Below, piece after piece: positions 27,247-33,400 of a stretch of DNA of 64,000 nt. Position 1 is the stretch's first letter. Each line of letters opens with the position of its first letter. The stretch spans positions 310,001-374,000 of the forward strand of contig JAKMXF010000133.1 in the NCBI GenBank assembly GCA_024704765.1, given 5' to 3'. The position numbers and the translations under genes are program-made. The DNA comes from Oopsacas minuta. Lineage: Eukaryota > Animalia > Porifera. The notes below the pieces were generated by a model. It was not told where the DNA came from. It did no database searches and worked only from the letters and a program-made list of their open reading frames with translations.

Positions 27247-30231
27247 TTACTTTTGATAAAGTTTCTCTACTGGACGGAAAGCATAATACATCTTCTCCAA
27301 TGCTGAACAATAAAAATGCATCTTTTTCTTAGCGTCCATCTGATAAACTAACCAACTGCACATACCTGATTTGTAAGCGTTTCTCATAGGGAACATAATT
27401 CGGTGTCCTCTCTCGTGAGCTTTGCGAGTGTCCCCTACAGTTGTTTCAGGTACAGCAAACACACTACAAAGAATTCCATCTACTACAATACAGCTGTTCA
27501 GTGTGAAAGGAGAATATACACCTTCATCTCTGACATAACTCACACTCAATACTTCTACACTACTCACTACATCTGTAGCTGCGACACACACAAACTGTAA
27601 CATATCTCCTGGACACACTCTACCAGCTGGAATAGGTTCTCCTATCCCTTCCTTCTCCACGAATACCAAATGATTCTCACTCACTTTCAATTCTCCCTCT
27701 TTATACCTGATACACAGATATTCTGTCTTTCTAGCTGGATCTAGATGTCCCCACAGATAGAGGGAGGAGAAACAAGATCTACCTTGTGAATCAACAGACA
27801 ATATCTTATCCCCTATCTGCAGATCTCTCATACACACTATTCTACCTGTACTCAATAGTACTTTAGAGCTTGCTGGGAAACAAATAGTTTTACCGTCTGG
27901 TATTTCAGATTTAGCCTTTTCAGAAGCTTCGGCCCGAGTATATGACATTTTCCCTGAGAATAATCTTAAAATTCTAGACTGTTTCCTAACTGGAGGTACT
28001 TTAAGACAGATCTTTTCGAAAGCCTCTTGCAGAGCAACATTCTTCCCTTCCTGTACTATATGAAATATGGGCTTATATATTATCTGTAAAGGTAAAATAG
28101 AAGGATAATAATTTGTGGATTTTTCCCATGCTAGCCATTGTCCGGTAGATATATCAATTAGAGTTGGTTGATAATGTCTAGGATCACCCCCGAACCATTC
28201 TAATTCTGCATGGAGGAGATCCATAAGTGGAGACTTAAATTCTTTTTCGACGTCTACAGTGCGTGCCAACTTATCTGCAATAGAAAGTCCTGATTTGATA
28301 TCCATCACCAATGTGAGAAACCATTGTCTTAGATATTGGAAATAACCTGAATCTCGCAGTTTATCGATAGAAACTTCGAATTTTCCTTGTATATAACCTC
28401 CTACGCTAACTTTTGTCACAACACACCCACCATATTTGGCGAAAAGTTTTGTAAAATATTGAACATGAGTAGTATTTGATTCGTCATAACTTTCAGGGAT
28501 ATCTTCCAAGGCATCCTGAAATCCCTGAGTAAAGTTATACGCAAGATTATTACTTTTTATGGAAAGATTAATTTTTTCAAAAACAAAAGATACTTGTACG
28601 GTTTTTTTCTTACTACCTTGCTCGATAATGTTATAACCAGGAGTTGGAGTTAATTGAAATATTTTTTCGTAATTCTCTAAGTCGCAACCTTTCAAAAAAT
28701 CTTTAGTATATTCGGCAAGGTCTGAGTAGTGGTTACAGATAAAATTTATGTCATTAATATATTCACATTGACAATTTCCTGGAATTAAGAATCCATAAGG
28801 GTGAAGGGAAATATCTGGTGGAAAAGATATCACTGCCTTATCACTAACAGTCTGTTTCATCAAGTCATATCCATGACCTAATTTCGTTGATATGTTATGA
28901 ATGACAGGCGGCTTAATATTAAACAAGGATGATAATGTGCGTATTTCAATTTGATTCAGTTTGTATGGGATTAGCAAGATCTCAATATCATCAAGAGACC
29001 GCGATTCTAAATCCTCAACTTTCTTTATCCCACGTTTATCGAGGAGGAATTTTAGCGGGTACAACTCATCCTCTAGTTTCAAACCTATATTCTCTGGATA
29101 TTTACTACTAATCTTAATGTATTCATCGATTTTGGAAGATACTATTGTAGGTTTGAATGGTCCTTTCAAAATAGTAATTTTTTCATAGAAATATTTTTTG
29201 CGTTCATCAAATGCAGCTTGATCGGTAATAGAGCTACATGATACAATATTAGGCCGAATTATATCTAATGACTTATCACTAGTTGTGCTAAAGAATAGCC
29301 TGATAGCTTCAATCCCGATTTCATCCTGACTTCCCCTCATCAAATCTATACAAGCTTTGAATAAATTATTCGGTTGCTCTTCCCCATTATAAAGTATACT
29401 AAAATCTCCGACCTTCTCTAAATCATAATCAACATAATCATTTTCAATATAAATGACAGGGACCTCAATTTTGAAGAATCTCCTAGCGAGCAGTTTGATA
29501 TAACAGGCCTTAGAATCAAGCTTTGTCTTCCATACTTTAGGAGGTAGACTACACACGTGTGTTAGTACTATAACAACGTTTGGATGTTTACGATCAACAA
29601 GATGTAATCTCTTCCTCTTAACAACACTAAACATGCTAGCAATTCTAGAAATACTGCCTAACATCCTCTCATCATTCACATCAACTACAATCAGGAAAAT
29701 ATTAGGAAATACAATGTAATTGTAATTCATTCCAAACCATTTCAAATGACGCATTCCTAACTGCGGATGTTGTGAGATAAATTCTTCAATCAAAGATAGA
29801 TTTTCTGCGTCTTTATGCTTGCCCTGGGTGTCTGCGAATCCAGGAGAGTCCACCCAACTAATTTCCAAATTTTGAGCTCCCCAATGATCGCTTTTCAAAC
29901 TAGTTATGTATTCAATAACGTTATCAGTAGTTGATTCCCTATAAGATGTAGCCATTAGTTCTTCAGCTCCACGGAATAAATGCTTTAAAGTAGAAGTTTT
30001 ACCTGAACCAGACAACCCATATAGAAATATAACAGCACGATTCGCCGGCCTCTGAGCTAATAAACTCTTCTCAACCATTCCCATTGCCCTGTGACGTCCG
30101 CGTTGGGAGATTCGAAAAGATTCTGCAGGGTTATGAGGTAAGGACAAATAGCGATGTTTGAAACCGGGTCGTTCTGGCTTTTGCGGAATTTCTGATTCAC
30201 CTTGACGCGGCAATTGGCCACGCTCTGCCAT
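27247..30231 (-). CDS. GTPase-MACPF-Hog(Hint+SRR) fusion protein, copy 1 (994 aa, single exon)
   Basis: G1 GLSGSGKTST, G3 DSPGFADT, G4-like LTHV; MACPF LGHGYDL...FQDALEDIPESYD...KYGGCVVTKVSVGG...WFGGDP...WEKS...PSILP; Hint from Cys784 CFPASSKV...VSENH...GVYSPFTLNSCIVVDGILCSVFA; SRR-like GHRIMFPMR...MHFYCSALEKM. Confidence 0.88.
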   Translation of the reverse strand: MAERGQLPRQGESEIPQKPERPGFKHRYLSLPHNPAESFRISQRGRHRAMGMVEKSLLAQRPANRAVIFLYGLSGSGKTSTLKHLFRGAEELMATSYRESTTDNVIEYITSLKSDHWGAQNLEISWVDSPGFADTQGKHKDAENLSLIEEFISQHPQLGMRHLKWFGMNYNYIVFPNIFLIVVDVNDERMLGSISRIASMFSVVKRKRLHLVDRKHPNVVIVLTHVCSLPPKVWKTKLDSKACYIKLLARRFFKIEVPVIYIENDYVDYDLEKVGDFSILYNGEEQPNNLFKACIDLMRGSQDEIGIEAIRLFFSTTSDKSLDIIRPNIVSCSSITDQAAFDERKKYFYEKITILKGPFKPTIVSSKIDEYIKISSKYPENIGLKLEDELYPLKFLLDKRGIKKVEDLESRSLDDIEILLIPYKLNQIEIRTLSSLFNIKPPVIHNISTKLGHGYDLMKQTVSDKAVISFPPDISLHPYGFLIPGNCQCEYINDINFICNHYSDLAEYTKDFLKGCDLENYEKIFQLTPTPGYNIIEQGSKKKTVQVSFVFEKINLSIKSNNLAYNFTQGFQDALEDIPESYDESNTTHVQYFTKLFAKYGGCVVTKVSVGGYIQGKFEVSIDKLRDSGYFQYLRQWFLTLVMDIKSGLSIADKLARTVDVEKEFKSPLMDLLHAELEWFGGDPRHYQPTLIDISTGQWLAWEKSTNYYPSILPLQIIYKPIFHIVQEGKNVALQEAFEKICLKVPPVRKQSRILRLFSGKMSYTRAEASEKAKSEIPDGKTICFPASSKVLLSTGRIVCMRDLQIGDKILSVDSQGRSCFSSLYLWGHLDPARKTEYLCIRYKEGELKVSENHLVFVEKEGIGEPIPAGRVCPGDMLQFVCVAATDVVSSVEVLSVSYVRDEGVYSPFTLNSCIVVDGILCSVFAVPETTVGDTRKAHERGHRIMFPMRNAYKSGMCSWLVYQMDAKKKMHFYCSALEKMYYAFRPVEKLYQK
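27448..27882 (-). repeat. 435-bp near-identical duplicate of 30722-31156, coextensive with the Hint domain
   Basis: Base-by-base comparison shows 2 mismatches in 435 bp (one synonymous Gly, one Ile/Met); identity starts at the Cys1 codon and ends at VFAVP. Confidence 0.95.

Positions 30232-33400: not shown

Follow-up and report, generated by a model that had tools for sequence, protein, structure and literature searches.

Long-lasting gene conversion confined to the Hint domain probably homogenises two tandem GTPase-MACPF-Hog genes of the glass sponge Oopsacas minuta

How can one module of a protein stay almost identical in DNA between two neighbouring paralogs whose remaining sequence is diverged to saturation, and why should this identity begin and end at the limits of a single domain? 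The question is raised by two tandem minus-strand genes, here called A and B, within a 64,000-nucleotide (nt) stretch of the 61.5-Mb, 365-contig genome of Oopsacas minuta (contig C133, positions 310001-374000; "the window", from whose first letter positions are counted). Each gene is a single open reading frame: gene A at 27247-30231 (994 amino acids, stop codon at 27247-27249) and gene B at 30500-33532 (1010 amino acids counted from the first ATG, the frame being open from 33598). Both encode the same architecture of GTPase, MACPF domain, Hint domain and C-terminal tail, with Pfam matches to MMR_HSR1/AIG1-like GTPase, MACPF and Hint (PF01079); the latter scores 103 bits against a cut-off of 29.7 and extends to model position 207 of 213. 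Both belong to a GTPase-MACPF-Hog family of glass sponges, in which they are ancient paralogs lying in tandem. An earlier inspection of the letters alone, called here the sequence-only reading, had noticed the shared Hint and proposed either a recent gene conversion or an exchangeable, intein-like cassette. The explanation favoured here, with a probability of roughly 85%, is a long-lasting ectopic gene conversion of the Hint between A and B, with tracts limited by the end of homology.

The homogenised block occupies 27448-27882 in gene A and 30722-31156 in gene B, both on the minus strand and in direct orientation, 3274 bp apart. In A it comprises 145 codons, from the catalytic Cys1 codon TGT (27880-27882) to the proline of the ..SVFAVP end (27448-27450). 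The two copies align without gaps over 435 nt with two mismatches, one of them synonymous (27646/30920, GGG/GGA) and the other exchanging Ile for Met (27802/31076, ATA/ATG). In gene orientation the first codon of the block is TGT, Cys1 of CFPASS.., and the last is CCT, Pro of ..CSVFAVP; the preceding codon is ATT in A and TCC in B, and the following one GAA in A and CCT in B. Upstream of the block the paralogs share 37% identity in protein and 50% in DNA, and in the tail 36% and 46%, respectively, while third-position identity outside the block (0.27-0.40) is saturated. The 30 codons adjoining each edge are as diverged as the remaining flank, with no gradient toward the block. At a flank identity of about 50%, 433 matches in 435 positions are impossible by chance. 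The description given by the sequence-only reading, covering the length of the block, its two mismatches, its limits and the divergence of GTPase, MACPF and tails, is therefore accurate, and the genome-wide count that it recommended returns exactly two copies, which form the sole long repeat of the window. Two AAC/AAT-rich low-complexity runs, at 26316-26613 and 21013-21078, are mutually inverted and represent poly-Asn/Gln-type coding or a simple repeat.

The limits of the block were compared with those of the Hint fold. Residues 1-145 of 1AT0, the crystal construct of Drosophila Hh-C17, align from Cys1 to ..SVFA, one or two residues before the last residue of the block, and the 146-residue construct 6TYY aligns with it from Cys1 to ..SVFAV. 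Judged by these alignments, the block is the structural Hint module, and the structures bear out its placement "at the domain edges". The tails, of 66-73 residues, occupy the place of the Hedgehog sterol-recognition region; the A-type tail (27250-27447, 66 codons) and the B-type tail (30503-30721, 73 codons) are paralog-specific, each being conserved in the orthologues of its own gene.

No exact match to the gene A protein turned up in the public assemblies, a set that excludes the O. minuta genome itself. Relatives were found by a word-based protein search of ENA assemblies for A and B orthologues, after which the loci were retrieved; the five assemblies obtained consist of metagenome-derived contigs. 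Gene order in all five is PCI, 5MP1/W2, histone deacetylase, B, A and dual-specificity phosphatase (DSPc), the phosphatase gene lying within the retrieved stretch in four of them, and the A orthologues show 51-65% protein identity. In loci L019, L020, L022 and L023 the block common to A and B measures 434, 434, 432 and 435 nt, with 0, 2, 6 and 9 mismatches, respectively, and the segment from Cys1 to Pro spans 432-438 nt over these four and O. minuta. Across genomes the copies belong to direct tandem genes about 3.0-3.9 kb apart, and identity drops within one codon of the block to flanks of 44-58% in DNA. In the sixth genome, ERZ20067936, where A is multiplied, the shared block starts 34-36 nt further in and has the same end. 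The 3' edge, GCW GTN CC/N (the slash marking the edge), is found in six of six genomes with agreement within 4 nt, and five of the six have their 5' edge at base 1 of the Cys1 codon (TGY). On a seventh contig B is cut short, and the 20 Hint residues left to it agree with the A copy of that contig from Cys1 on.

Some features of these loci are recorded for completeness. The order PCI-domain gene, 5MP1/W2, histone deacetylase, NF-Y-like histone fold, B, A and dual-specificity phosphatase is kept across the six genomes (window 36119-39678 and L019-L023), although the A and B orthologues are only 50-85% identical in protein. The L023 A gene is split by a frameshift, and a contig outside L021, L023 and L024 has a B gene that breaks off 28 residues into the Hint. 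In ERZ20067936 (ptg000116l, 174-227 kb; L021 and L024) a long A array contains fused, truncated and Hint-less copies, for example a copy of 766 amino acids followed by a Hint fragment of 118 amino acids.

Phylogenetic analysis assigns different histories to the parts of the genes. In the trees of the cargo and of the tail, A and B each form a clade with 100% support, and each clade mirrors the same species tree. The cargo (GTPase and MACPF) extends over 27883-30231 in A, with MACPF at about 28021-28611, and over 31157-33532 in B, with MACPF at about 31319-31861, and is homogenised in neither gene. In the Hint tree, A and B of each genome are sisters, with 85-100% support where readable, the O. 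minuta pair standing at the base of the tree. At synonymous third positions, Hint copies agree to 93-99% within a genome and to 47-84% between genomes; for the cargo the figure is 36-47%. Over the whole tract, identity within a genome reaches 93-100%, compared with 59-91% in protein between genomes, and the small indels that alter the block length between genomes are common to both copies. Since paralogs are closer within a genome than orthologues are between genomes inside the tract, and the flanks follow orthology, the duplication is older than the species. The synonymous states at bases 3, 6 and 9 of the block and at the fourth base from its end differ between sister genomes and are common to A and B, so conversion reaches within about three bases of both edges; the last base of the Pro codon is usually unshared.

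Taken together, the trees and the synonymous pattern demonstrate concerted evolution by gene conversion and exclude constraint at the protein or nucleotide level as well as recent duplication. The Hint has been repeatedly copied between A and B in each lineage by interlocus gene conversion, while cargo and tail evolve as separate orthologues. The suggested restriction of conversion to the Hint is borne out by this contrast between the cargo and tail trees, ordered by orthology, and the Hint tree, ordered by genome. The suggested recency needs amendment: conversion did occur, but not as a single recent event, since the block has been homogenised independently in six genomes, with the 3' edge shared and the 5' edge at Cys1 in five. 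The suspicion that two boundaries at domain edges are not a matter of chance is upheld by their reproduction across genomes and by the Hh-C17 alignment.

The pattern is not limited to A and B. The O. minuta genome contains at least 13 GTPase-MACPF genes, ten of them with a Hint. The DNA of a second Hog type shows 96-99% identity among C33_457, C33_461 and C33_465, which stand in tandem on contig C33, and C186_a and C186_b, while the copy on contig C88 is 79% identical to this group; the cargoes of the type-2 genes are saturated. Here too identity starts exactly at the TGT of Cys1, upstream of which the sequences are unalignable. The type-2 pattern was seen in three to six paralogs per genome, always with the start at Cys1 and with variable 3' ends. 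In most O. minuta members the tract extends to within a few codons of the stop; that of C33_465 ends at ..YYAPFT. The C33_465 lineage has its own tail in every assembly with a detected orthologue. O. minuta and three further assemblies have its 3' edge at ..PFT; one assembly has it at ..IAASV, and in yet another it falls about 25 codons earlier. At the protein level, two to four paralogs per contig in other assemblies (five in one tandem array) have a genome-specific Hog from Cys1, and the residues upstream of Cys1 follow orthology. At the DNA level, the five-gene array of ERZ20067936 likewise starts at Cys1: there are 1-7 mismatches over the initial 240 nt, and ungapped comparison of the upstream sequence gives 28-40% identity, one recent duplicate pair being the exception. 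Between unlinked family members, protein identity of the Hint is about 35%. With tandem copies homogenised, the C88 copy at 79% and unlinked copies at about 35%, homogenisation follows linkage.

For C33_465 it was also considered that a foreign Hint had newly been overwritten, as it has a W/609-like tail and falls outside the type-2 clade with weak support. This idea was dropped, long-standing membership of the converting group explaining the data equally well; the C33_465 orthologues in five other contigs carry the type-2 Hint of their own genome together with the same kind of tail. In one further O. minuta locus (L014:2409-5551, plus strand, G000:C45), the MACPF and Hint parts lie in two overlapping frames, for which a frameshift, an intron or an error is possible.

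Two paralogs of the family on contig C33 (L015:227-2500 and L015:2804-5101, both plus strand; G000:C33, about 452.2-457.1 kb) lack a Hint and end near the would-be Cys1. They terminate in CSIL and CFIF, and a Hint-less relative from another genome, P0062, in CKII. These ends look like CaaX prenylation boxes. If they are, the Hog-less members may gain by prenylation a C-terminal lipid where the others would get a sterol, and the CaaX-like ends fit a Hog module serving as a lipid-anchoring device for the GTPase-MACPF cargo.

The mechanism proposed for the conversion draws on the limits of homology. Breaks within the identical block would be repaired from the neighbouring copy 3.3 kb away, presumably by synthesis-dependent strand annealing, in which the copied strand overruns the homology and the unmatched flap is clipped at the boundary. 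Clipping at the end of homology would make tracts stop exactly there, with variants a few bases from the edge still transferred. The edges would correspond to the outermost invariant Hint motifs, Cys-Phe-Pro at the start and Ser-Val-Phe-Ala-Val-Pro at the end, past which the sequences are paralog-specific and probably too diverged to pair. The 5' edge is also the predicted autoprocessing cleavage site: the part upstream would become the mature cargo, diverged between the paralogs, and the part from Cys1 onward would be a generic, disposable module for processing that can be exchanged without harm. Selection would act against conversion of the cargo, and for A and B also of the tail, and divergence presumably blocks it by now; the boundary would be held in place jointly by selection on these two parts and by heteroduplex rejection. 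That 3' ends differ among paralog groups and between species (close to the stop, at ..PFT, at ..IAASV, or deeper inside) is what tracts limited by homology predict.

Several points weigh against this explanation or soften it. The repair pathway is borrowed from general models of double-strand-break repair, a role of selection in fixing the edges is a supposition, and the five relatives, being metagenome-derived contigs, are probably glass sponges to judge from synteny and similarity. GC-biased gene conversion was tried as an additional signature and discarded, as GC content at third codon positions (GC3) gave no clear signal (Hint and cargo 0.30 and 0.30 in O. minuta; of the relatives, two have a lower and three a higher value in the Hint than in the cargo). 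Some 15 codons upstream of Cys1 lies a 9-nt island of identity that the tract has never reached in six lineages, a stop short of available homology that may be due to selection or chance. Finally, the A/B block of ERZ20067936 starts 12 codons inside the Hint, and codons 3-12 (33 nt) exist there in two forms, similar to those of the W/L019/L020 clade and of the L022/L023 clade, respectively. This pattern in the outgroup tentatively suggests two outward shifts of the edge to Cys1, opposite in direction, which a passive model with a frozen boundary does not predict.

Such a double outward move, if it took place, hints that the edge is actively held at Cys1. A bolder view, which is put forward tentatively and considered rather doubtful, regards the autocleavage site of glass sponges as an evolutionary hinge: all Hog modules within an array would be continuously exchanged as a common pool, the cargoes would go on diverging, and the gene would consist of two units joined at Cys1. 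Should selection or a feature of repair hold this edge, a recombination route would be available for re-pairing Hog modules with cargoes and tails. Identical direct repeats could also drive the shuffling of cargoes and tails by unequal crossing-over, which bears on the assembly of Hedgehog-type proteins from parts.

Among the competing explanations, selection for identity itself survives best, and it is nevertheless improbable. It states that the sponge benefits from the same Hint in A, B and the array members, for instance through equal processing kinetics or a shared trans-acting partner. Homogenisation does persist over all genomes in the set and in two independent Hint types, and a similar idea was raised for mammalian gene pairs by Carson and Scherer (PMC2720389). 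Against this stand the lack of evidence for Hint interaction and the divergence of unlinked members, which indicates that identity is not needed family-wide; proximity alone accounts for which copies are homogenised.

Still less probable is a mobile Hint cassette, which would travel from one host gene to another by recognising the Cys1 junction in an intein-like or otherwise site-specific manner; the sequence-only reading had been reminded of intein-like mobility. Three paralog groups, and nearly all genomes examined, have the 5' edge at Cys1, all O. minuta Hints begin with the common TGTTTCCCAG, and the possible double shift of the edge described above would also suit such a mechanism. However, copying occurred only between already homologous positions of linked paralogs, the A/B block is present in two genomic copies, the 3' ends follow the local extent of homology, and homogenisation declines with distance. 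The absence of a homing endonuclease, already remarked upon from the letters, is confirmed: there is no extra open frame, and all 435 nt code for the Hint, which leaves no room for one. No allele without the Hint block was encountered, though no search for such alleles was made. The splice-acceptor-like TTTCCCAG/G at the start of the Hint (slash at the junction) was considered as a hidden acceptor causing the Cys1 edge and was rejected, since the motif is not conserved in other genomes; this equally deprives a site-specific mechanism of a candidate signal. Mobility in the intein sense finds no support, given the restriction to homologous positions, the variable 3' ends and the dependence on distance. 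The term "exchangeable cassette" is acceptable only in a weak sense, namely that the Hog part evolves as a unit uncoupled from the cargo. Homologous repair, and with it gene conversion limited by homology, suffices for everything seen.

A functional DNA or RNA sequence within the block (an overlapping element, a structured RNA or a codon constraint) was brought to mind solely by the synonymous identity within genomes and has next to nothing to recommend it: nothing was found in its favour, Hint synonymous sites vary between genomes to the extent given above, and the length of the block varies between 432 and 438 nt. An Rfam search of window positions 26000-34500 for a known RNA element in or around the block gave no match, and the strand opposite to the block has no open frame of 80 or more amino acids.

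An artefact of assembly or polishing, in which truly diverged Hints were collapsed or one was copied over the other, and which the sequence-only reading had named as a refutation of its own claim, is hardly conceivable, because the de Bruijn contigs (unitigs) obtained independently from three runs of the source sample all fork at precisely 27448 and 27882, the 435-nt piece has a depth of 554 against 140-227 in the flanks (2.4-4 times, as expected for two loci), five independently assembled genomes have the same block in their own sequence, and the two differences between the copies argue against a simple in silico duplication. The excess depth fits one sequence common to both loci and probably to both haplotypes. 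In run X5, from another organism with a divergence of about 4-8%, a break occurs at the corresponding position, and the depth is 2.3-fold that of the flanks. It is true that repeats of this family do break assemblies. Contig C186 (L017, G000:C186, 7569 bp) begins with the 3' end of a type-2 Hog gene, ends inside another, and has a run of N within the Hint of its first complete gene; evidently, homogenised Hog repeats broke the assembly at this contig. As a separate observation on the reads, runs X2 and X3 of the same sample differ from the assembly by 2.4-3.3% over the A cargo (window 27883-30751) and by only 0.2-0.5% in the Hint block, in the 3' flank (27000-27477) and at the start of the B cargo (31127-31600), and the A cargo seems far more polymorphic than its surroundings.

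The case shows how finely conversion can be confined, that is, to one protein module of intronless genes in saturated surroundings. It has a functional logic, with a disposable processing module shared and a mature effector free to diverge. For the origins of Hedgehog, it means that Hog modules and cargoes can have separate histories within one family. For annotators and phylogeneticists, it means that Hint or Hog trees in such families track genome and linkage and not gene orthology, and that the repeats break assemblies as well.

In relation to known systems, the sponge proteins resemble the Hedgehog-type Hog in the PF01079 match well over threshold, in the Hh-C17 alignment from Cys1 and in a tail at the sterol-recognition position. 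Their cargo is a cytosolic-looking GTPase-MACPF protein instead of the Hedge signal domain, the cysteine of the Hedgehog SCYA motif is differently placed, and self-cleavage is a prediction from sequence. Intein homing shares with them a Hint-fold module and copied DNA that starts at the catalytic Cys codon; in contrast to it, the sponge module has no homing endonuclease, shows no insertion into an allele devoid of an intein and has no C-extein beside it to be religated, and its copying needs the homology of linked paralogs. Fusions of AIG1/GIMAP GTPases with Hint have been described in amphioxus and some fungi (PMC12373286). As far as the available part of that account goes, they likewise combine an immune-type GTPase with a C-terminal Hint in expanded, variable families; they appear there without MACPF, and concerted evolution of the Hint is not mentioned in that part.

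The closest parallels are found in concerted evolution proper. In the CEACAM family (PMC7042247), according to the portion of that source at hand, clustered paralogs also have part of the gene homogenised by conversion, and the sponge family probably serves in defence as well; the difference would be that the sponge homogenises a generic processing domain while the effector diverges, and that no exon-intron structure is involved. Segmental concerted evolution lasting more than 100 million years has been reported for the mammalian pairs BMP8A/B, DDX19A/B and TUBG1/2 (Carson & Scherer 2009, PMC2720389). There too, old duplicates in many species contain a segment closer between paralogs than between orthologues, the rest being orthologous, and the process is very long-lasting. 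A full-text literature search pairing "Hog domain" with "gene conversion" found no paper. In contrast to the mammalian pairs, the sponge segment is one protein module in an intronless frame with edges within a few bases in six genomes, its 5' edge is the predicted self-cleavage site separating two products, and its flanks are saturated where the mammalian ones are mildly diverged. The A/B pair is an unusually sharp case of a known process, concerted evolution limited to a module.

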